A DNA stretch of 64,000 nt. It comes from Selaginella moellendorffii (Eukaryota; Plantae; Lycopodiophyta). The notes beneath the pieces were generated by a model. That model saw nothing but the letters and a program-made list of their open reading frames with translations, did not search any database and was not told the origin of the DNA. Both the position numbers and the translations under genes were made by a program. The stretch spans positions 788,296 through 852,295 of the forward strand of contig NW_003314317.1 in the NCBI RefSeq assembly GCF_000143415.4, given 5' to 3'. Of the stretch, positions 3,990 through 40,000 are shown piece after piece (within the stretch, counting starts at the first letter, position 1; each line of letters opens with the position of its first letter).

Positions 3990-6290
3990 TACATTGATAT
4001 GGGTTTATATTTATTATAACATCTAGTTTATAAATTTAATTAAATATTATTTCTCATAATTATCATCTTTTACTATTTCTATTGGCTATCTGCTCAAATA
4101 TATACCTTAGTTTAGAAATAGTTATCCTTATTTGAGTTTATTTCCTTTGGGGACTTGTATGGTGACATACCATAATTCATTTACATTATTGCATGGTCTA
4201 TAAATCCTTAAAACTTGTAGGAAACAGTGTAAATATTAATAATGAGAACTCTTTGGTTATTTTTTTCAGTAAGGTATATGATAAATGATATTTAAGCATA
4301 TGGTGCCAATGAGTTTAATTATTATTGATTGTGCCTAATAAAATATTTTATATCTCTAATTAAAATGTATGTGTTTTCTTCTATGTAATGTATTTATACA
4401 ACTCTCAAATTCATTTAATGAATTAAATACTTTCATGAACTAGTAGGAGAGCTAAAAGAATGAGATTTTCATGAATAGTTTGATGTTTAAGATTTAGATT
4501 CAAATTAATGCTTGAATAATAGCTAAACTTGGAATACATGTAAAATATTTGGAGTCTTTGATGATTTCTAGGGTTAAAATGTTGTGTTTGCTGTAAAATT
4601 GAACTATATGACATTTTTAGTTGAAGTCTTGCCATTTTGAAGTCATTTTTACTAATATTTTATGTTATATATATTTGTTTCCCAATTGTGAGTGCCGCTA
4701 AGAATTATTGATACTTAGAAGTTTGTTTGTTCTTTTGAGAATGTGAAATTTTCCTTTCATTTTCTCATCTTAAGTATTGAGTTAATGTCAAAAAACTTGA
4801 ATGTGGGATTTTCTTGTTTTGGCCAAAGTATTTTATATTATAATGAACTCTATTATTCAACCTTGAAAAAAGTCTTTTATAATAGAAGATCTCATATTAT
4901 CCAAGCTTTAAAAACACATTTTCTTCTTTTATTTCCCTGTTTTTACTTTAACTACTGCTAAAGTTTTTGTTTTTAGTGTTTTTTATTTATATTTTGTTCT
5001 TCTACATGCTTTCTTCCTCAATTTTTCCAACTTTTTCCTCTTTTCTCTAATGTTTTAAATTCTTTTATACTAAGGAGGGATGGATAGGAGTTTGATGTAA
5101 GTCGCAAATTTTTCTTTTGTGATTTTTTAACTTACTTTGCCTACTTAAACATTTTTGTCTTGGCTGTAATAAAATTCTTTTTGCCAAAATCTAATCTTAA
5201 TATACAAACCTTACTACACAAATAATAGAGTGTGTGGTGGTTGATCATTTGGTCCCTCTTCCATATCTATTAATTCATTAACTGGTGAAGTTAGTGGTGA
5301 ATCTACTGGTGTTTTTACATCTGGTACTTCAGTAGGAGGATCATCTATAAAAAAGGAAATTAGATGAACTTAACTACCTTATTTACCTGAGTTTAGATGT
5401 GGATACTTATTATCCCATTGTTTTTGAATAAGCTTGATATATATATTAATATAATCCATCAAAGACTGTTATACTCTTCTTTCAACCAACTTTAGTCTAT
5501 ATTAAATGGCAAGTTTAGATTTAAACTTTGGCAATCAAGTTAGTTCTCTGAGTAAGCTATTTCACTTTTAGTTCTCTTCACAATCAACAAAAACAAACAA
5601 ACTTTTGTCTCTCATAAATAGAGCCATGGTCAATATTAAAAACTTTAGACTTTACCCCTTTTAGCAACAATGGTATTGGTGGTCAATTGTGGTATTTAAC
5701 TTGATGATTGTTGAAGTACATTTTGTGAAGATAAACTTTTTTCTTGCAATTTGGATGCAAGCAAACATGACTATACAATTTGGAACTATCATCACAATTG
5801 ATTCCCTTTGAGAGCAAATCCAAACCTTTCCAAACTAATTGATGGCTCTTTTTAATACCTCTACTAAGAAATGTACTTGATTTGAATTTTCCTTACTTGT
5901 GGCCATGATGGTGCCTATTGTGATGCTCTAGTGCTCTCCTAACTTTGAGATCAAAAGGCAATTAAATACCCTAAACCGTCAAGGCATGTTGAGGATTTTC
6001 AATATAATTTGTCATCCTTACAAATACAATTTGGCATGCAATAAATTATAACTTATTATTTATATATAATTAGTTTTGTTTAAACATATTTGGTCATACA
6101 ATATATTTAATTTGTCATCTAAATATAATTTGCCATACAAATATAATTTGACATGGTTACTTTGGAATTTATCATGTGGGGAAAATAGTAATTTGTCATG
6201 ATAATCTATAATGTGTCACCTGGTCATTTTGGAATTTGTCATGGAGGGAAGTAGTGTGGCACATTAAATTTATAATTTGTCACCTAATTT
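3990..6290. mobile_element. AT-rich degenerate repeat/transposon island
   Basis: Very low GC and no long ORF. 4690-5030 resembles 38790-39200. Ends in an array of AATTTGTCAT-like motifs. Confidence 0.5.
5998..6285 (+). repeat. Array of about ten degenerate AATTTGTCAT motifs
   Basis: aatttgtcat, aatttggcat, atttggtcat, aatttgtcat, aatttgccat, aatttgacat, aatttatcat, aatttgtcat, aatgtgtcac, aatttgtcat, aatttgtcac within ~290 bp. Confidence 0.75.
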
Positions 6291-6364
6291 GGAGAACAGT
6301 TTAGTTGGGCTAACAACTTCCTCGTACAGCATCCTACAACAAAATGATTTTCACACACACAAAA

Positions 6365-7050
6365 AGTAGACGAGGATTGGAAAGCTCGGCCACCATAGCT
6401 CCCAGTTTGTAAAGGTTGAGTACCTGGAATTAGAAAAACACATTGAAGAGACCCGTGACTTTCGTCTTGATGCTTATTTTTTCCACCAACGAAGACGTCC
6501 TCTCTGGATTCCTGTAGCTCCGATCCGAGCCAATCTTTACTTCCTGGAAAGCTCAAGTAATTTTAAATTCAGCTCCAGCGACACAAAGGGAACAAACACC
6601 ACAGAAGCTTACAAGAGCTTCGTCATCGAACGCGGATCTTACTCGGGTGGTCTGTTTCAGCATAGAACCAGGAATTAGACTTTCATTCGTGTAGAGAGCA
6701 CACGGACTTGGAATAAGAGAAGAAGGCCGAGCAAACCAATTGGAGCTGCTGAAAGCAAATTGTTCGTGTAAACTAGAGCACCAGCGGTACCTGAAAGAAA
6801 GAACACTCCTTGCTTCTCATTTTTTTCCACAAAGACCCAGAAGAACGATTGGAATGCGATAATCAGGTGCTGGAATGACAGTCTCCCCAACGATCTTGTT
6901 TTAAACTACACAAGGACTTCGTCACGAATATCGCTCGAGAAACCAGAGAAATTAGTACCTGATTCCACAGCCCCAGGTCTTGATAGCCTCCTTGTCGAGA
7001 AGATCACAGAAAAACTTGGAGCGCTTCACAGCAATCCAGCGCCTACATGA
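6365..7050 (-). pseudogene. DUF3119 pseudogene (copy of 76-800)
   Basis: Colinear with the gene at 1-908, but the first exon is missing, the GGKNRW exon end/donor is deleted and the copy stops after ...PILVY. Confidence 0.85.
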
Positions 7051-7389
7051 GAACGGTCGGGATCATGGCATATTCGTTTTTCTGTTTAAGAATATTCCTG
7101 TGTGATTACTATTTCTCACTACTTTTTAACCACCTTTAAGGATTCTAGAATGTCTGACGTGAACAACCACCTAATTGAGAAGTATCTTCGTCAATCGTTG
7201 AAAAGTTTACCTCAAAGTTGCAAGGTGACGGCATCGGTCTTGTACGCAAACGCGCAAAAACAAAAGGCAAGCAAACAAACAACTTTTTTCTTCAATCGCG
7301 TGGTAAATCCCATCGAACTTATTAGACATCACACCATCATCCTTCTAGATCGAAAAAAAAAAGAAAAAGAATCTTAAGGCAAGCACCAA

Positions 7390-15875: not shown

Positions 15876-16364
15876 TTAGGAGGAAGCTCTGAGAAATCTG
15901 GCCACGGCCCTTTGGCCCTCCACGACGGCTTGCTGGGACAGCTGCCCGGGCAAGGCGAGCTTGCAGGCGGTCTGGATGTCCTTGGAGGAGAGCGTGGCCG
16001 CCTTGTTGCGCCGGACCAGCTCCGCCGCCTCTCTCGCCAGCCTCTCAAACATGTCGTTCATGAACGTGTTCATGATATCCATGGCCGTGGCCGATATCTT
16101 GAGATCCTCGTGCGTTGTCGACCGCAAAACCTTGAGGATGTAGCGCTTGTACGTGTTGCTCGCCGCCGCCTTCTTTCGCTTACCGGATCCAGGAGCTTCT
16201 GCCGGAGTCGCTGGAGCTTCAGTTTGGGGCTGCGCCGCTGGAGGAGCTTCGGATTTCGTCGAGGGAGTCTTCTTGGCGGGAGCTTTCACCGGAGGCTTCT
16301 TCATCGTCTTCGCCGGCACCTTCACTGGCTCCGCCACCCGGGCGCTCTTCGCCACCTTTGCCAT
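15876..16364 (-). CDS. H2B: Divergent histone H2B variant (162 aa)
   Basis: Lys/Pro/Ala-rich tail plus histone fold TYKRYILKVLR...ISATAMDIMNTFMNDMFERLAREAAELVRRNKAATLSSKDIQTACKLALPGQLSQQAVVEGQRAV. ATG at 16364. Confidence 0.9.
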   Translation of the reverse strand: MAKVAKSARVAEPVKVPAKTMKKPPVKAPAKKTPSTKSEAPPAAQPQTEAPATPAEAPGSGKRKKAAASNTYKRYILKVLRSTTHEDLKISATAMDIMNTFMNDMFERLAREAAELVRRNKAATLSSKDIQTACKLALPGQLSQQAVVEGQRAVARFLRASS

Positions 16365-16391
16365 GCTGCAAAGGCAAACACAGCCCAAGCT

Positions 16392-16510
16392 GTATATATA
16401 TATCCCTCCATTATAAAAAGTCACTCTCAAGCTCAGGTATGTCCGTATAGAATATGTTGTCCGTACGCAACCCCTCTCCATACGGAATACGTCCGTACGC
16501 AAATTAGGAA
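16392..16510 (-). promoter_or_regulatory. Putative H2B promoter: TATA tract plus clustered TCCGTA(C) motifs
   Basis: TATATATA about 30 bp upstream of the ATG and four TCCGTA/TACGGA motifs at 16442-16498. A similar module lies at 17213-17286. Confidence 0.45.
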
Positions 16511-17358
16511 ATGTGATGTGCCTACCAAGATTCTTTACAACAACGACAGTAACACGAACCCGAAAAACATCATGCATATCTCTCGTTTGAGCATAGTTTG
16601 GAGGCTCAGAGAAGGAAGTTAGGCGTTCCTGTAAGTGAAGTACAATGCATAGCTGATGAGCCGGTTAAACTAACTTTCTATTCAAGAGAGCGGAATTTGC
16701 TTCGTAAACAACAATACCCTTACACTGTATAAGCCTCGTTGTCGTCTGGAACATAAATGGGCACCTCAAGATCACGTTGAGCAGATACTTGTCGCGCGAA
16801 TATCGTCCACGATGATGTTGCTACTCGACAAGTCCTGCAACAAGGTGTTGCCGGTAGAGTCTGTGCGAGAAGATTGGATCCAAAACCTGCAGCGCAGCCT
16901 CGGCATACGGCTGCGCCGATGCAGTCCACAAACCAGCTCGTACAGCTCGGCCATGGCGTGCAAGAAAGAATCCGCACCGGGTCTCTTGGCCATGTAGAAA
17001 TCGTCGCCTTCTCCACACAGGCAGTCAAAAAGGCAGCCTCGCGCGCATCTCATGTAGACCCAGATCGAGCCTCTCTTCTGAGGTGAGCACGCTTGTTCCA
17101 GCAATGGCTGCCCATCGTTCGGTGCCGACGCTACACGGCCAATAGTCAATTTGATGTCAAAGCAGCGCCGCAGCTCCCCAATCTCGACGTCCAACTTCGA
17201 AGAGGAAGAAGAATATTCTTCCATAAAAGGTTATCCGTTCAGAATGTTTTATCCGTACACAAAGGCGTATATTCCGTACATTAGGTTTCGGCTCACATTT
17301 TGCCATAATCAGTCAAACTATACGTGTGTTTCTTGTTGCAAGAGTAAGCACAGCGCAG

Positions 17359-20061
17359 CTAAACCAGAGTATGGTGATGGTGGTGAGAATGGTGGTGCTG
17401 GTGCTGCGAGTGATGGTGATGAGCGATGTTAGCGTCGGAGCGATCGCAGCAGCTTGCCCCTGGATTGTTGGCGGTGGGAGCGGCAATGATACCGCTCCCT
17501 CCGCCGCCACTTCCACCGCTCGGATGGTGCTGGTGATGCTGCTGCTGCTGCTGCTCCAGAGCTCCTCCTCCTCCTCCTCCCGCCATGGCCGACTGCTCGC
17601 CTTCTTCCTCCTCCTCCTCCGCCTCCTCCTGGCTGCTGCTCTCAAACTCCTCCGCCCGCTGCACCAGCGACAGCTCCATCTTGTCCATCTCGCCCTCCAC
17701 CTTCCGCCGGAGGATCTGCAAGTGCTCCCCGGTCACCATATGCACCACCGACATCTCGTCGATGAGGCTCCGGTTCTGCGCCTCCTGCAGCCCCTCGCCT
17801 ACCCGCGCCGCCACGTCCGGGTGCCGCCGGTTGAACCACACCCACCACTTCTTCACGGGGATCCCGTCCTTGAACGGCGAGCCTTTGTTCACCGACAGCG
17901 GCGCCACCCTCCGCCGCAGCGAGTTGAGCGTCATGAGCGACTGCGATACCTGCTGGATGCTGAAGAACCACTCCACGATCGCCGACTCCTGCTCGCCCCT
18001 CGTCATTCCTCCGTGCGGGCCTCTCTTCCTCGAGTGCGTCCTCCCGTTGAGCCAGTTCCTCAGCGTCGTCCTGGGGATCCCGTAGCACTGCCCGGCCTTC
18101 CGGATGGAGATCCCGTTCTTGATCGCCGCGAGAGCGTTGTGGAGCGCCTGCTCCGTCCACCCGTTGCTCTTCCTCGACTTCTCGTCCGACTCTTTCATCT
18201 CCCCGGACTCAAACTGGCCCTCGTCTTCCTCCTGCTTGCCTTCACCACCACCACCACCACCACCACCACCACTCGGGCTTCTCTTCTGTGCACCGTTGAG
18301 CGTGTACTTGATTGTCGAGCGCGGGATCCCAAACTGCTGCCCCGCGCTGCCGATAGTGCAGGAGCCACTCTTCACGGCTTCCACGGCATCTAGCAGCGCC
18401 TGCTCTGTCCATTTGCCACCTTTTCCCCGCTTCTTGCCTCCGGACATGGAGATATCCGCGGACTCGAGCTGCTGCTCCACGCAGGCGTCGTCTCTTCCAG
18501 GCGTAAGCTCCTCGCTAGCGTCATTGTATGGGAAGTCTTCCCCAGTCATCCTACCACCTTCTTCTCCCAAACTAGAGTCTCCCTGCTCGAAAGCGAGAGA
18601 TGTGTGCGGGCCGCGTTTCCGGGACCTTGTCCGACCTGTTATCCAATTCCTGAGCGTTGTCCGTGGTATGCCATAAGCCCGGCTTGCTTTGCAGATCGTC
18701 AAGGTGTTGTTTTTAATCGCTTCCATAGCCTCCATCAGCGCCTTCTCCGTCCAGCAGCCAACTTTCTTCTTCCCTTCTCTGGCCTTTTTCTTCAAACGCT
18801 CCTTCTTCTCGCCACCATCAGGAATCTGATCGTCACCACCGTCGTCCTCGTCGTCATCTTCGTCGTCTTCCTCATCATCCTCATCGTCATTCATCTCCGC
18901 CACAGCCATTGCATAGGCATCCTCCCTGCTACCATGGAATGGCTGCCCGTATACAGTAACCTCGGCCCCTGACGACGATGACTTCTTCTCCTGCTCCTTC
19001 ATCCAGTAGTCAAGCGTCGAGTTTGGAATGCCGTAAACCTGTGCTGCCTTGCTCACAGGCATCCCCCCGTTCCTCACAGCGTTGAGTGCCTCAAACAGCG
19101 TATGCTTCGTCCACACTCGCCTCCTCTTCCGCAGCAAACTATCCTCCTTACTGTCACTCCCATGCCCCTCCTCACCGGAGTTTATCGTCACCTCGTTCCC
19201 CATCATCAGCGTTCCGGGATGCTGATCGCCCTGCATCTCCTGGCGACAAAACGAGAGAGCCTCGTCTACTTTCGGCCCGCGCTTCCTAGACCTGTTCCTC
19301 CCGTTCAACCAGTTCCGCAAAGTCGACCGAGGAATCCCAAAGTCCTTGCTCGCTTTGTAGGCTGTCAAGGATCCACTTTTCACAGCCGCCACCGCGTCGC
19401 ACAGAGCCTGCTCCGTCCATCGGACTTCCCTCGTCCGCTTCGAGTCGGGCTGGTCGCTATCGTTTCTCAGCTCGTCATCGTCGTTGGCATCGCAAAGAGA
19501 AGGATCCTCCCACCTCCCACCCTCCGCTTGCATGACTACGTGGTGCGAGCCATCTAAGACGTGGTGAGCTCCTTCCATCACCGAGACGCTCTCAGCCCGG
19601 CCACTGTAGAGTGGCTGCTCCCACCGGACCTCTTTCACGATCTGGTGCTGCCCTCCACCGCTGCCATCGCCTCTAGCATCGCAGAACCCCTGCTCGGTCC
19701 ATCGGAGCTCTAGTTTGTTCACGGCCTGGTGATGATCATCGTGGGAGCCGGGAGCTACCACACCCATCCCTCCTGCTAGAGCCACCAGAGCCTGCTGGCT
19801 TCCTTGCAATTCGCCCTCTCGCACGCCATACTGCGCTGCCACTCCCTGGAGATCCTCCCGGAGCACAAAATGCTGGCCATCCCTCACGACGTACTGACCA
19901 GGAATGTGGTGGTGGTGATGCTGCTGTTGCTGCTGCTGATGGTGGTGATGGCTCTCCGGTGCCATGGCGAAGTGATGCACGCCCTGGAGGTGATGCTCGC
20001 TCCCATCCCTCACGGAATCCATCTGCTGCTGGCTCAGCGACAAGACATTCACAGCGTCCAT
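17359..20061 (-). CDS. Multi-Pipsqueak HTH (x5) + CENP-B/Tc5 HTH DNA-binding protein (pogo-transposase-derived, no DDE domain)
   Basis: Five WT..AL..A..AV..G.....KA...YGIP.(S/T)TL repeats, then TRGEQESAIVEW...FKDGIPVKKWWVWFNRRHPDV. His/Gln-rich and acidic tracts. One long open frame; first in-frame ATG at 20061. Confidence 0.85.
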   Translation of the reverse strand: MDAVNVLSLSQQQMDSVRDGSEHHLQGVHHFAMAPESHHHHQQQQQQHHHHHIPGQYVVRDGQHFVLREDLQGVAAQYGVREGELQGSQQALVALAGGMGVVAPGSHDDHHQAVNKLELRWTEQGFCDARGDGSGGGQHQIVKEVRWEQPLYSGRAESVSVMEGAHHVLDGSHHVVMQAEGGRWEDPSLCDANDDDELRNDSDQPDSKRTREVRWTEQALCDAVAAVKSGSLTAYKASKDFGIPRSTLRNWLNGRNRSRKRGPKVDEALSFCRQEMQGDQHPGTLMMGNEVTINSGEEGHGSDSKEDSLLRKRRRVWTKHTLFEALNAVRNGGMPVSKAAQVYGIPNSTLDYWMKEQEKKSSSSGAEVTVYGQPFHGSREDAYAMAVAEMNDDEDDEEDDEDDDEDDGGDDQIPDGGEKKERLKKKAREGKKKVGCWTEKALMEAMEAIKNNTLTICKASRAYGIPRTTLRNWITGRTRSRKRGPHTSLAFEQGDSSLGEEGGRMTGEDFPYNDASEELTPGRDDACVEQQLESADISMSGGKKRGKGGKWTEQALLDAVEAVKSGSCTIGSAGQQFGIPRSTIKYTLNGAQKRSPSGGGGGGGGGEGKQEEDEGQFESGEMKESDEKSRKSNGWTEQALHNALAAIKNGISIRKAGQCYGIPRTTLRNWLNGRTHSRKRGPHGGMTRGEQESAIVEWFFSIQQVSQSLMTLNSLRRRVAPLSVNKGSPFKDGIPVKKWWVWFNRRHPDVAARVGEGLQEAQNRSLIDEMSVVHMVTGEHLQILRRKVEGEMDKMELSLVQRAEEFESSSQEEAEEEEEEGEQSAMAGGGGGGALEQQQQQHHQHHPSGGSGGGGSGIIAAPTANNPGASCCDRSDANIAHHHHSQHQHHHSHHHHHTLV

Positions 20062-20633
20062 CCCGCGCAACGCTAGCGCTCTCACATCCTGCCCAAAACG
20101 CGCGTCAGAGCTAGAACCCTAAAATTTCTTGCAAGAACTGGAGAAAGTGGGGAAGAAATCTCTCCAAGAAAACGCCCCCGGAGAGCTGGGAATCCCGAGA
20201 AGGAGCGCGGCTTGCTCACCTCGACATCCGGAGGACGCGCCAAGAAAATGCCGCAGAGATTAGGGCAAGAGATCCAGGAGAAGCGGCGATCGTAGCGCCG
20301 GCGTCACGAAGCATCCTTACTCAAGAACCCTGGATGGAAACCAAAGAGAAAAAAAATTTGATCCGAGAGAAGAGCTCCCACTGTGAGAAAGAGAAAAACA
20401 TTTCATTTATCTCGCCTAGTTTAAGCTACAAAATGCTTCGCATCTGCGCCGTCCGATGCCAAGCGGTACCAACGGCCACGATCCAGAGCGACATGGACGG
20501 ACGAGATTGAGGTGCAATCTTTCCGTTACAGTCGTGGCGAGTTCCCAGCCGTTATTTTTCTTGCCAGTTCCAAAGTTCTGGGCTAAAACGAAGAGTTTCA
20601 AACAAAACAAGTACCCATAGAACGATGAACGAT

Positions 20634-23600
20634 TCAAGGCACGTAAACAAAAGGCTCGGGAGGAGCTGGCTCCAAATCGACGCCTCCCATTGGGATTGGA
20701 GCGGCGGCGGGAGCTCCATTTGCTCCTCCTGCTGGAGCTGGCGACGCTGGCGAATCGGTGGAGACGAGCTCCACTGGCTCCGACGGCTCCAAGTCTCGCA
20801 GCATCACGAATCCCGCCGGAGTTCTCTTCACTGGAGCGTAGCGGCAGCCCTCCGGGAACCGGACATACTTCTCCTGGAGTGGGATCACTCGCGCTGGATT
20901 GCTCAAAACCTCGGAGGTGGCCTCGGGATTTACAGCCTTCTTCTCGACAGCACTGTCCACCTGGAACGGGATTCCAAAGTTTCAGCACAAGAACAAGAAC
21001 GGAAAGAGAGAGAGAGAGGAGAGATGGAGTTACCTCCATAGCCTCGCTGCCATCTTTCGCTGCTTCTTTCCCTGAGGACGATTCCTCCGGAGGTTCAGCA
21101 GTAGAAGCTGCTTCGGACGTGGCTGCCGTGGCACCTGTGCTACTGCCGACGTCCATCTGCGAGCTCGTATCAGGCTGCTTCTCTGCCTTCGTCTTCGCGT
21201 CTGTGTCTTTCTTTGCTTTCGACTTGGAGCGGCCGGACGTGGATAGAACCGCCGTGGGGAGCTTGATGTTCACGTTGACGGATGGAGGCGCTGTCGGCGC
21301 AGGATATGCAAACAACGCGGGCTTCGCATCAGAGATGATGTCAAACTTCGGCATCCTCAGCTCGTGGTTGAGTCCGATGAATGCTGTTGGTGCGAAAGAG
21401 AGGCTGACGAAGTACGTCAGCGGGTACCAGTACCAAAACTGGGTGAAAACGGCCATCCCCACGACTGCCATCACCCGGTCGTGACCAGTTCGCGACTGCA
21501 GAGATATGGTCACATTCCTGCCTCCGGCATCTAGTATACCATACGCCAGTATGGCTCCCATCTTGCTCATCGTGTCCTCGTGTTTGTCACTAACAATTTT
21601 GTCGAGTTGACGCCTGCGAGAGGAACATCACTTCTAAGCGTTATACTGCAAATAGCTGACAAACCTGAAAACAGCAACGTGAGGCTCTCGGGCTTCGGTA
21701 GCCTGCATCAGAACCATCGCCATAGCCATAAGTGCTCCCTGGCGAACAAAGTCCACAGCGTCTGACGTCAAAGGTTCCAGAAGCGAGATCGCCTCACTGG
21801 ACGCAGTTCCAGCACAGGAGATTCCGACAGCCATAGCCGCGCCGTAACGAACGTGAGCGTTGTACGACTCCGACAAAAGGGAGACAATTTTTGGAGTCTA
21901 AGAAAAAAAAGAAAAAGTTAGACGTCGTCATATGCAAGAGAAATAGTGAATCTTACCTGAGTAGGATCAGAACATAGCACGAATCCAAGAGCCAAAACTG
22001 CTGCTCTTCGGACATCGTCACTCACGTCCGAAACGGCAAAATGCAGCAGACGGCGGATAGCACTGTTGTTAGACGTGCCTCTATAAGCCAGAGCCAGGGC
22101 GTACATGCCACCATAGCGAAGAATAGGATCCTGATCCCTTGTCATCTGCTCGATCAAAGTATCTGCTTCTTCTTCACGACCATAGACAACCAGCGCTATT
22201 CCAAGAGCCAGCCCCCTTATAATCTTCTCGTGTTGTGTATCGTGAGCATACGTGAGCATTTCTCCGGCTTTATCGCTGGCGCTTCCAACCATAAGCAGAC
22301 CCATAGCAATCCCTGCCGCCTCGCCAGCGATGGCGCTGTCTGTATACAGTACATGTTTTATGTCTTCATAGATTTCATCGTCGGCAGTGCCCAGTGCGGC
22401 TAGTCCTAGTCCAAGACAAGCACCATGTTGGATCACCTGCATCACAAGTACCAAAACATTATTTACAAACGTCTTACTGAGAATGACGCTTACCTCATTG
22501 TTTGTTTTTCTCAAGCTTTCTAGTAAGAACGACTTGATTCCTTCACCGTGGTTAGCATGTATTAGTCCTAAAGCGTAAAGAGCTCCACCTTCCGAGTATG
22601 GACTTCCCCCACCAGTCCCACCATCTTGAGGTAGATATGGGGCCATTAAAGAGCGGCCCTGCTGCAAATGACCTCTGTGAATAACACCCAGCCCAGCCGT
22701 TGCACTAAACTTTGCCCAATTGGTGGCCCGACTCAGCCAATCCTAACAATATGCTCTTCAATCAGCCGCAGCATTAACAACAAAAAAAGAACGCTCACCA
22801 GATTATCGCGCAAAAACGTATCCACTGTTGTCCCCGCATGCATCAAAGCATTGGAGTATATTGTAGCGCTGTGACAAACACTGTTTCTCGTTTCAACTGA
22901 ATGCTTGATAGTCTTCAGAATAAGGAGGTCGGACCTGAAAACATAGCAGGCATAAGAATCGAGAAAGATAACAATGGTCTTACTTGTTACGGCTGTATAA
23001 AAACTGTAAAGTGAGATGGATAGGTGTTTCTCCAGAAAGAATGCCCTTCAATTTCCCCATCCTGTCGACATAGATATTATCCTGGGAATCCTCGACGTTA
23101 GTGGCTGCTTCTGCACTTGTTGAAACGTCCATCATTCCGTTTTGTTCTGTAGTTTCCGTATTTTCACCCCCGCCTGAACTACTTCCAGCCCGAGCCTCAG
23201 GCAAACGGTCCCTCACGTTTAGTAGGAACAGCTGATTCTCGTTTTCAAACAAATCGAAGGCGATCTGATAAGCCAAAAGTGCTTCGATCTGCCAATACGA
23301 GTAACAACTTCAGTATCAACGTTAACGGAAGCATTATTACCTTGTCTCCTTTGATAAGCTTGTCAAGAATATTAGCGACAGTTTGAGGATCATTTAGAAA
23401 CATTAGGCACTGGCAGACTGTGAGATAGTCCGGAGAATGGAGCCCCTGATGCTGGTTTACAATTAAACGGAGAACCTAGTCAAAGAAAAGGAAGAAAAGA
23501 TAGAAAAGGTTAGAGCTGAGTATGACAACACGGCTCGTTCACCTCTTGCCGAAACTCTCGCTTGTCAACATGAGTCCGAGCCAGCCGAAAGCAGTACGCA

Positions 23601-37009: not shown

Positions 37010-40000
37010 ACTAAATGCATAAATGCATATAAAGATTATGAATTATAGAATTGATTTTATAATTCCAATCAATGACGTTTATAATACCTTTATCATAATT
37101 TAGTAATGAAAAGATTTCTTGACGATTTAATAATGAAAGATTTTCCTACATTTTATAGTATTTTTAAATTCAAAATACTTTTTAAGTATAATTAAAAATA
37201 TAAAATAAAATCAAAAGGTCAAATTCTAGCTATCACCATTTCTATTTTTATTCAAATGAATCTTTTTTTCATATGTTTGTTCTTTTCAATTTGCTCCTTT
37301 TACTTTTCTTTCCCAATCCTAAGAAATATTATATGTGTTTGTTTATTTTGAGTGGGTGTTGTTGAAGCCATCTTTATTCTAATAGTTTAGAAAGTATTTA
37401 AGAATTTAAATATATAATTAATATTTGTAAATTAATGCACATTATTAAACTATTTATCACATGTTAGTTTGTTGCTTTGTTCATCACTGTATTTATAATA
37501 ATTTATGATTTTATTGTTTTTAATTAATTTTAAGCTTCTAAAACTATGTAGTAATTCTATAAATTTATTTCAAAGAAGATATCATTTACCTTTAACTCAT
37601 AAATTTATTTATTTCAAGTGTATAATTCTAGGTGTCAACTTAATAAAGAGATATATAGCTACAAAGAATAAAATATAATATTCAAGAAAATTAATATTAT
37701 ATTTTATAGTTATATAAAAAATCTTTAAATAAATTTATATTGTTATATATGGAACTAAATCTAATCTATCTATACTTCTATATAAGCAACAGTATAAACC
37801 CCAATAAATATATCTATTCTTATATCCTAAACATTCACATTAGTGGTGATGAGGGCATTGTGATTTATTCTTTGAAGAGCAAATTTTTTTGGCAATACTT
37901 TGCTTTAGTGATCAGAATTGTGTTTTTATTTTTATTCCTTCATTCTCTTTTAAATTTACATCTATATTAACTTTATGCAAGATTTATAATTTTAGCTATC
38001 ACTATACTTAGATTTGTTCTTCTTTTTTATATTCATTGCATTGCCTTCTTCTGCTATATTATGCTATCATTGATTAAAGAATATATCACTTAAGGCTATT
38101 AATACTATTTTGTTGGATTGAGCTTTTGGCATAATGGGGCATGATCATATTGCTGTTGCACTTATCCTTGATGTATTACCATCTTTAGCTTTTGTGGGAC
38201 ATGATTAAATAACTTTACTATTCTTGATGTTTGTCATCTCCCATTGATGTGGATTATGATCATGATATTGATTGAAGAACTATAAATGATGTAGTTTAGC
38301 TTTTGGAAAATGTTCAAAGATTAAATTTATGGGAAAACAATTTTTACAAGCTTGAATGATTCTAGATTGTGATGAAAAGTTTAATTATTATGAAGATAGT
38401 TTTAAAGATAAAATAAAGATTTTGTGGAGTAAATGTTAATCCTTTAATCTATTATTTGATAGTTTTTCTTTACCATTTACATTTTCCCAACCTTTTTCTT
38501 ATTTCTCACCTAACCCACCTTCTTATGTTCCTAGTGTTTCATCTTCATTTATAGTGTTTTCTTCTCCTAACATATCAATTATTTGTGACTTTTATAATTT
38601 TTATTCTCATTCTTAGTCTAGTATTGAGTTGAATATTTTTTGTCATCTTTATACTAATTTAGATATTAAGTATATACATGAAGTTAAAATTTTTGTTTTG
38701 TTTCATTGATAAAGTATTTAATCAATTCTAGTGTTGAGTATTCCCATGTTCCAAGGCTGAATTACTTTAGTGAATGTTCTGAGTTAAATATGTGTCCCCA
38801 CTTGTGAATCCCACTAAAAGCTTTTGCTTTACCATTATTGCTAAAAAGTTTATATATTCTCGTGAGAGTGTAGACATTTTTATTCATAAAGGTTTAAACA
38901 TAGAAGGAAAAGGCTCATGAACAAAAGTAAATTTTCCCATCTTAAATATAGAATTATGTATTAAGATGGTTGAGTAGTGTAAACATTTTATTTATATTGT
39001 AGTGGCTAAAGTATTTTATAACAAGAAGTCCCTTATTTTCCAAGCTTTGAGCATATATCTTGTTTATTTCCCCATTTTTGCATTGATAGTTATTGAAAAA
39101 AGTTTTTTAAATGTTTTTTCATCCACTTTTTCTCCTTCCACAATATTTATTCTTTAATTTTTTTTGTTTCTTCTCTTTGCTTTAATTTTTTAAACTTTTT
39201 TTTTCTTTGGAAGAAGGGGTAGAGGTGATAAACCCTGATAATGGAGTGAGGATAAGCAAATACAATGAACAAATGACATGGTTTGTGAAATGAGGATGAA
39301 TATAACAAGTTTGAATGGAATATTTAACCTTGATATAATGAGGCCAAATGGATGCAACAGTGAAGTGAGGTTAAATATAAATAGTAGAGTGCGAATGAGT
39401 GTAGCAAGTCAAAACAAAACTAATGCATTAGAAGGATAAGAAAAATATAGAGAATTGACAAAGTGAGTTTAACCTTCATATATATTGCTAAATGAGAACA
39501 AATGTCGTAACTCTAAGTTAACATAAATCTTAAATATTAACCAAAGGGAAGATACAAAGATGAGTTCTATTTATAATTGTGAGTTTGAAGTAATAGTGGT
39601 TTTGAAGGATTGTCAGTGAGCAAATGTATTATTTATTACAATAGTGCTTTATGAATTGCAATGGCTTTTGAAGTTTTTTGTTTCAATTCAAAGTTATAAT
39701 TTCAAGGTTGGTTTAAGCATTTGCTAGTTGCATACAGAATTGCAATTGGTTTATCAAGAGTTTATAATCAATTGATACTTATGCCATAATTTTAGGTTTC
39801 ATTTATCAACAACTATATTAATATCTATGGGAGTTTTGGATTTTTATAGTAAGTTCATATTTGTCCAGCAAAAACATTAGATATTCCACTTGATTTATTA
39901 TCATCACTTTTTCATCTTTCAAAGAAAAGGATGGTTAAGGTCTATATATATATATATAACCCTACCTAAATCATATGCTAATTATAGTTTATAAACTATT

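Follow-up and report, generated by a model that had tools for sequence, protein, structure and literature searches.

A gene on the minus strand of a 64,000-nucleotide stretch of the genome of the lycophyte Selaginella moellendorffii (assembly GCF_000143415.4, contig NW_003314317.1, positions 788,296 to 852,295; hereafter the window) encodes a 900-residue protein in which five Pipsqueak-type (psq) helix-turn-helix (HTH) units are followed by a divergent HTH of the Tc5/CENP-B type. It is probably a host gene that goes back to the DNA-binding head at the N-terminus of a pogo-type transposase, a reading carried by its domain content and pogo ancestry, its transcription with a spliced 5′ untranslated region (UTR), its single syntenic locus with two alleles, and a deficit of amino-acid-changing differences between those alleles. 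The open reading frame (ORF) occupies 17359..20085 and spans 908 amino acids (aa) when counted from a GTG; the first in-frame ATG, at 20061, gives the 900-aa product whose numbering is used throughout. An earlier reading, made from the letters of the sequence alone, had placed a frame of about 900 aa at exactly 17359-20061. A public gene record, LOC112344834 (S. moellendorffii, uncharacterised protein), is 98-99% identical to the 900-aa protein.

The psq array is the clearest feature of the protein. Pfam HTH_psq (PF05225) matches five separate stretches with a whole-protein expectation value (E) of 6.3e-50 (167 bits against a gathering cut-off of 20.4), in keeping with the five units of the sequence-only reading, and the W..GIP(R/N)(S/T)T cores of these units begin at aa 215, 317, 437, 551, and 635. 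The basic tail TLRNW..GR..SRKRGP follows units 1, 3, and 5 and is missing after units 2 and 4, as had been described, with unit 4 retaining a degenerate remnant of it (..IKYTLNGAQKRSPSG). Likewise, the vestigial unit starts RWTEQ, RWEQ, and RWED that had been reported upstream are located at aa 120, 146, and 183, respectively, and at the DNA level the first of these shares 81% identity with the beginning of unit 1 (repeat family D4). The His/Gln-rich and acidic tracts are also present as claimed; His plus Gln account for 30% of the residues at aa 1-118 and for 23% at aa 761-900. The acidic run covers aa 392-411. Pfam searches of the N-terminal 232 aa and the C-terminal 219 aa returned noise only (GP38, POLQ_helical), and look-alikes from the ESM Atlas stayed below the 0.9 threshold for a lead and merely repeat the family assignment.

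The domain following unit 5 had been read as a CENP-B/Tc5 HTH, and this assignment is borne out by homologues, profile, and fold, with no direct Pfam match and in a divergent form. Specifically, Pfam HTH_Tnp_Tc5 (PF03221) finds nothing in the whole protein (E 1), in aa 682-900 alone (E 10), or in the 171-aa module (E 0.001). An exhaustive HMMER search returned 1136 matches at E ≤1e-3, most of the best of which align as a single block to aa 625-769. This block, comprising unit 5 and the next ~80 residues, aligns end-to-end with psq+Tc5 modules in more than 100 proteins; in the homologues it consists of HTH_psq followed by HTH_Tnp_Tc5, and Pfam assigns PF03221 in 69 of the 79 aligned modules. 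The alignment profile matches the CENP-B DNA-binding domain (1HLV) at E 4e-4 over residues 17-130, covering both HTHs, and also matches the psq HTH of LCoR. Furthermore, an AlphaFold (AF2) model of the module, with a predicted local distance difference test score (pLDDT) of 84.6, consists of two three-helix bundles, joined by a linker and followed by one long helix, and the top match of this model in VIA-align is again 1HLV (a middling Z of 6.8, with 106 aligned residues across both bundles). Foldseek against the PDB returned nothing under E 0.046, with bipartite HTH domains at the head of its list; its low global scores are explained by two HTH bundles joined through a flexible linker. In the alignment consensus, a conserved RK.GP linker joins the family's two HTHs, and the SRKRGP tail is its counterpart. 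Taken as a whole, the aligned relatives, their Tc5 calls, the profile match to 1HLV, and the model identify the domain after unit 5 as a divergent Tc5/CENP-B HTH.

On the evidence of homology, the module descended from the head of a pogo transposase, the origin that the sequence-only reading had proposed. Many of its relatives carry the catalytic domain of such elements; Pfam DDE_1 is found in 7 of the 10 longer single-module homologues scanned, and a purpose-built DDE hidden Markov model (HMM), constructed from those DDE_1 homologues, matches 38 of 161 retrieved proteins. By identity (42%), the Selaginella module is nearest to P0006, a “short” protein from environmental contigs, which, with a DDE_1 ORF lying 300 bp downstream of it, represents a pogo transposase's first exon. 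Other short homologues, too, could be transposase first exons. Word-index searches with the array and with the module recovered the allele only, the array search being swamped by low-complexity words, and are uninformative on relatives. The same kind of search with the module alignment gave 36 short proteins, none above 38% identity where the alignment was substantial, along with one short match of 54% over 23% of the query, and no Selaginella fragments among them. In S. moellendorffii itself, pogo-like sequences have been reported and assigned to clade 38 (PMC7325037). The P0006 locus (L005:5610-7751 and L006:6494-8635), from a eukaryote, has the same flanks in several metagenome samples, and the DDE region of the first copy is spread over three reading frames (6357-6542, 6546-6635, and 6639-7103), as would be seen with introns or in a decaying pogo copy.

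In the Selaginella gene, the transposon hallmarks are gone. Pfam finds no DDE_1 in the protein, and neither the window, in six frames, nor the 6 kb flanking the reference allele on each side contains a match to the DDE HMM; as a positive control, the same model recovered this domain from a related element at E 1e-27. Around the ORF, a scan for terminal inverted repeats (TIRs) found only low-complexity or chance-level inverted repeats. Both absences had been noted from the sequence. Only one locus, with two alleles, was recovered by the protein searches, and the reference assembly keeps the same gene order (RPN2 - gene - H2B - lectin kinase), so that a single syntenic locus with two alleles is indicated. 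Near-identical copies bearing TIRs, a spliced-in DDE exon, a lack of expression, or neutral change, all of which the sequence-only reading had regarded as signs against domestication, were looked for and not found, the first by protein searches and the last on an allelic sample of 17 differences (see below). The gene is expressed, non-mobile, and single-copy, features that belong to the operational definition of a domesticated transposase gene, beside purifying selection and syntenic orthologues in other species.

Evidence for transcription comes from public assemblies. At least half of the sampled words from the gene stretch are present in 17 runs from nine studies, and contigs from four of these runs, in four studies, were aligned to 16000-21900. 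The records of these runs say only “RNA? (a guess)”; the 51-nt intron of the neighbouring RPN2 gene is removed in all four, and depth is zero over intergenic 16591-17181 in three of the four, identifying them as RNA assemblies. Colinear contigs from the four runs cover the gene from 17251 or 17302 to 20087, so the coding sequence is intronless, and one contig crosses a 131-nt GT..AG intron, passing from 20088 to 20220 and then extending to 20356. No downstream exon is added by the contigs, two runs ending at about 17251, 108 nt past the stop codon. Since exon 1 contains an in-frame stop and no in-frame ATG, translation starts at 20061. Some of the contigs carry variants of the other allele, which points to transcription from both. 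A 33-codon upstream ORF straddles the splice junction in the 5′ UTR (20089-20356, minus strand), and a minimal ATG-TGA is found directly ahead of the main frame.

The two alleles differ at nine synonymous and seven replacement codons, comprising 10 synonymous and seven non-synonymous changes (17 in total), and their insertions and deletions are all in-frame and limited to Gly, Glu, and Gln runs. The ratio of non-synonymous to synonymous divergence (dN/dS; NG86) is 0.19, with seven replacements among 17 differences where 78% of sites are non-synonymous (binomial p = 0.001), as measured from 17 differences in one species. Units 1, 3, and 5 and the Tc5 HTH are free of replacements, and three of the seven lie in units 2 and 4. 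On a small within-species sample, this allelic pattern argues for constraint on the encoded protein. The features of the gene are collected in Table 1.

Table 1. Features of the psq-array gene of S. moellendorffii, in the direction of transcription; positions are those of the window.
Feature	Position	Strand	Basis
Exon 1, 5′ UTR only	20220..20356	-	In-frame stop and start of the 33-codon upstream ORF; RNA contig (run X2) joins 20220 to 20088; frame analysis
5′ UTR intron, 131 nt, GT..AG	20089..20219	-	RNA contig skips 131 (CT..AC); GTGAGC...GGGCAG
Coding sequence, single exon, 900 aa plus stop	17359..20061	-	Stop codon 17359-17361; colinear RNA contigs, 4 runs
His/Gln-rich low-complexity N-terminus, aa 1-118	19708..20061	-	H+Q 30%
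Three truncated psq first helices (RWTEQGFCDA, RWEQ.., RWEDPSLCDA), aa 119-209	19435..19707	-	Sequence; DNA repeat family D4
psq unit 1 and basic linker tail SRKRGP, aa 210-266	19264..19434	-	Pfam HTH_psq; module HMM E 4e-17; repeat families D1, D2
psq unit 2, without basic tail, outlier, aa 312-368	18958..19128	-	Best Pfam HTH_psq stretch; matches LCoR HTH 2COB
Acidic D/E run, aa 392-411	18829..18888	-	Sequence; repeat family D6
psq unit 3 and basic linker tail, aa 432-488	18598..18768	-	Pfam HTH_psq; module HMM; unit comparison
psq unit 4, degenerate tail then Gly run, aa 546-602	18256..18426	-	Pfam HTH_psq; module HMM; 50% identical to unit 1
psq unit 5 and basic linker tail, aa 630-686; first half of complete pogo-type bipartite module	18004..18174	-	Pfam HTH_psq; module HMM; model helices residues 18-53
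Divergent Tc5/CENP-B-type HTH, aa 687-750; second half of bipartite module	17812..18003	-	Aligned homologues, profile, model
Predicted long helix past Tc5 HTH, aa 748-789	17695..17820	-	Model helix 129-170, pLDDT 83-89; last 20 residues thinly supported by alignment
Acidic/Gly/Gln/His low-complexity C-terminal tail, aa 790-900	17362..17694	-	Sequence; in-frame allelic indels here
3′ UTR, ~108 nt	17251..17358	-	Transcript contigs stop here in 2 runs

The array grew within its own lineage. Among the 234 psq units of all fetched proteins, units 1, 3, 4, and 5 are mutually nearest (46-61% identical, with units 3 and 4 at 35%), and sequence comparison places their origin in internal duplication, as the amplification proposed earlier had implied. 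Unit 2 is an outlier, being 33-40% identical to the other units, with foreign units equally close. The A-B-A-B-A pattern described by the sequence-only reading is real as a literal alternation of tails; its units 2 and 4 do not form a common “B” class, as they share only 33% identity. The pattern does not come from a duplicated A-B pair, unit 4, which is 50% identical to unit 1, being a unit-1-like copy whose tail has decayed. In DNA, the unit copies are 62-71% identical (repeat families D1 and D2), and the duplications are therefore old. Neither unit 1 nor unit 3 is followed by a detectable Tc5 remnant; past the linker of unit 3 the module HMM reaches at most eight residues, so that earlier full modules at units 1 and 3 are not demonstrable.

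Several observations weigh against a domesticated host gene. The contigs show neither strand nor level of transcription, and the runs carry a guessed label; the selection test is based on 17 allelic differences only; about half of the protein is low-complexity, and its whole-protein model in the ESM Atlas has a mean pLDDT of 0.49. The Tc5 HTH has drifted under Pfam detection, and decay is a possible cause. No orthologue in another species was found by protein searches, in which the representative library collapses sequences above 50% identity and the nearest relatives are 35-43% identical. The Sphagnum protein discussed below is only 35% identical, differs in architecture, and does not group specifically with the Selaginella gene. 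Finally, DNA binding, nuclear localisation, and target are drawn from knowledge of the family.

It could be supposed, then, that the gene is a transcribed relic of a pogo-like element, with its DDE deleted, its head internally expanded, no host function, and its decay still pending. This is unlikely. Transposases are indeed the closest relatives, the searches yielded no cross-species orthologue, the Tc5 HTH is divergent, low-complexity sequence is abundant, and units 2 and 4 hold three of the seven allelic replacements. Yet both haplotypes keep the 2.7-kb frame intact, their indels all being in-frame, and the deficit of replacements is significant (dN/dS 0.19, p 0.001). Likewise, a single locus flanked by housekeeping genes, a spliced 5′ UTR with expression in four studies, and the failure to find TIRs all speak against such a relic. 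In addition, although the unit copies are so far diverged in DNA, all five still score as psq, which argues that the frame has been kept open over a long history.

The plant relatives bear on whether the domestication was a separate event. Three are named, namely Sphagnum troendelagicum CAK9198581.1, Physcomitrium patens LOC112276029, and Ceratodon purpureus KAG0597716.1. The Sphagnum protein, a 1534-aa “HTH CENPB-type domain-containing protein”, is the best non-self full-length match (E 1.8e-82, 35% identity) and has five tandem psq+Tc5 modules after a repetitive N-terminal region of ~600 aa, the second module being without the first half of its Tc5 HTH. Its gene (OZ019904.1, L004:6001-11955) is situated between PRP39-like and SYF2 genes. 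The Physcomitrium protein (266 aa), which is present in RNA assemblies, and the Ceratodon protein (409 aa) each have one psq+Tc5 module and no DDE. Both the Physcomitrium and the Sphagnum genes contain introns and have ordinary gene neighbours, with no DDE found within 6 kb on either side. A tree of 58 modules (136 alignment columns, 200 bootstrap trees) places the Selaginella module as a lone branch in a clade with 94/91 support, in a polytomy with a Sphagnum clade and a clade holding DDE transposases. The Physcomitrium/Ceratodon clade is strongly supported and falls outside it.

A single ancient land-plant family, domesticated once before the bryophyte/lycophyte split and orthologous to these three moss genes, would accommodate the Sphagnum protein as best non-self match, the likewise DDE-less moss genes with their introns and ordinary neighbourhoods, and the position of all of them in one larger, well-supported module clade (98/93). 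That clade includes DDE-bearing transposases, however, and none of the 200 bootstrap trees united the plant DDE-less rows; the Selaginella and Sphagnum modules share the 94/91 clade, from which the Bryopsida clade is excluded; and the high Sphagnum score sums over five to six modules. Moreover, the Sphagnum modules group together (100/98), making that array a separate expansion. A single shared domestication is thus unsupported by the tree and has little likelihood, and several events are compatible with it. As a candidate orthologue, the Sphagnum protein was rejected as unsupported by the module tree. The earlier claim of an independently domesticated module accordingly divides in two: domestication is favoured by lost transposon hallmarks, expression, synteny, and mostly synonymous allelic changes, and a tree without union to the moss genes is compatible with independence.

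As a domesticated host gene, it has the following probable history. One complete bipartite module (psq HTH, basic RK.GP linker, and Tc5/CENP-B HTH) has been retained at the C-terminal end of the array, five psq HTHs resulted from internal copying of the psq half, sometimes including the linker and sometimes not, and the DDE catalytic domain and element ends have been lost. Both psq and Tc5 HTHs are sequence-specific binders of double-stranded DNA, and in related bipartite heads the basic linker lies in the minor groove. By analogy, the protein may bind double-stranded DNA through six HTH units and basic linkers contacting the minor groove, and several K/R clusters suggest that it is nuclear. 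With six HTH units per chain, a long or reiterated site should be read; the most economical guess at the target would be repeats related to the ends of pogo elements still in the genome. The acidic and His/Gln-rich disordered arms could serve as effector or as condensing/self-associating regions, and the overall role may be that of a transposase-derived transcription or chromatin regulator. It is tempting to go further and envisage a lycophyte-specific, CENP-B-like factor whose six-HTH array reads a reiterated sequence, such as a satellite or the ends of relatives of pogo elements or of MITEs (miniature inverted-repeat transposable elements), and nucleates silencing or centromere-type chromatin, although the chances of this are slim. 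The sequence-only reading had put forward a putative reader of centromeric or transposon-terminal repeats, or a silencing recruiter.

Truncated transposases are known as repressors of other DNA transposons, and a DNA-binding-only derivative might, by analogy, act for or against its own pogo elements by occupying their terminal repeats and repressing or titrating transposition, with no regulation of host genes. Although what has been retained of the transposase is precisely the portion by which element ends are recognised, and pogo-like sequences do exist in S. moellendorffii (PMC7325037), this appears quite improbable, as the five extra units suggest a different, longer target and the module's identity of only ~42% to the nearest transposase found makes a shared DNA specificity doubtful.

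Comparison with known systems helps to define what the protein is. With the pogo/Tigger transposase head (HTH_psq or CENP-B_N followed by HTH_Tnp_Tc5), unit 5, the RK.GP linker, and the next three-helix domain align end-to-end. Unlike pogo/Tigger elements, the Selaginella protein has no DDE_1 and its gene no TIRs, it is confined to a single locus, its Tc5 half is under Pfam detection, and its module is preceded by four additional psq units plus three truncated starts. Human CENP-B (1HLV), Jerky/TIGD, and the fission-yeast Abp1/Cbh proteins have the two-HTH fold and ancestry in common with it and are likewise transposase-derived and non-mobile. CENP-B and its kin possess a DDE-derived central domain, a dimerisation domain (C-terminal in CENP-B proper), and one bipartite head, and CENP-B proper is further defined by its binding to a centromeric box. 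The Selaginella protein instead carries a five-unit psq array and no DDE-derived region, and it is therefore not CENP-B proper.

With Drosophila Pipsqueak and other tandem-psq factors, the protein shares a tandem array of psq HTHs as a multivalent DNA-binding region. The plant array differs in ending in a psq-Tc5 module and in having units duplicated within its own lineage, and as Pfam found no BTB domain at E 1, the protein is not a BTB-psq (Pipsqueak-type) factor. The psq HTH of LCoR/LCORL (2COB) is the solved structure best matched in sequence by unit 2 (E 1.6e-6), whereas LCoR has a single psq HTH and is otherwise an unrelated animal corepressor. Closer to home, Sphagnum CAK9198581.1 is similarly DDE-less, multi-module, and set among ordinary genes, but its five-fold repetition (one copy truncated) involves the entire psq+Tc5 module, whereas Selaginella repeats the psq half only. 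Physcomitrium LOC112276029 and Ceratodon KAG0597716.1 are also uncharacterised, DDE-less plant psq+Tc5 proteins, with a single module each.

Animal proteins among the matches have 4-10 psq units, and an array ending in a psq-Tc5 module is seen in a Nematostella protein that retains its DDE and in a 1417-aa protein; as such arrays also occur in animals, the architecture is not unique. The 1417-aa protein, with eight psq units and a terminal psq-Tc5 module, and a 1972-aa protein with 10 psq units are large multi-psq proteins (P0003 and P0005) from the same 1.07-Mb and 0.49-Mb contigs of a eukaryote in ENA sample ERZ25878582.

Directly downstream of the gene lies an H2B-type histone gene (15876-16577, minus strand), with RNA-contig cover in three of the four runs, and the 51-nt GT..AG intron of the neighbouring 26S proteasome gene RPN2, removed in all four, is at 21613-21663 (minus strand). 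Elsewhere in the window, G+C falls sharply to 27-28% at 4001-6000 and 38001-40000, the genic parts having 50-59%.

Mutator, hAT, and Harbinger elements are the sources of the well-studied plant regulators that derive from transposases. A described pogo-derived host gene or psq factor in plants was not found in the literature searched, an absence that is no proof of nonexistence. In two surveys of pogo elements (PMC7386202, PMC7325037), the domestications reported are confined to mammals or vertebrates. The sequence-only reading had considered the architecture unusual for plants; as regards the literature this stands, and it is tempered by the DDE-less relatives in Sphagnum, Physcomitrium, and Ceratodon and by animal proteins combining psq arrays with psq-Tc5 modules. 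No new class of system is involved, since animals and oomycetes commonly have tandem-psq arrays and pogo heads lacking the DDE. Transposon domestication of this kind is already known from animals and fungi, and the gene itself is publicly annotated, as an uncharacterised protein. What is new is an expressed and apparently constrained lycophyte example, together with DDE-less moss relatives.

The Selaginella gene and its DDE-less relatives in mosses suggest that the DNA-binding head of pogo has been recruited in non-seed plants too, probably on more than one occasion, and that tandem amplification of this head may be a recurrent route to a multivalent DNA binder. With six HTH units in one species and two alleles, the gene offers a tractable case for learning what a psq array reads, and its single-module relative could easily be knocked out in Physcomitrium. 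Were the slim prospect of CENP-B-like chromatin reading to prove true, a pogo-derived chromatin factor would have been shown in a plant for the first time, and the CENP-B/Abp1 story would have been repeated independently once more.

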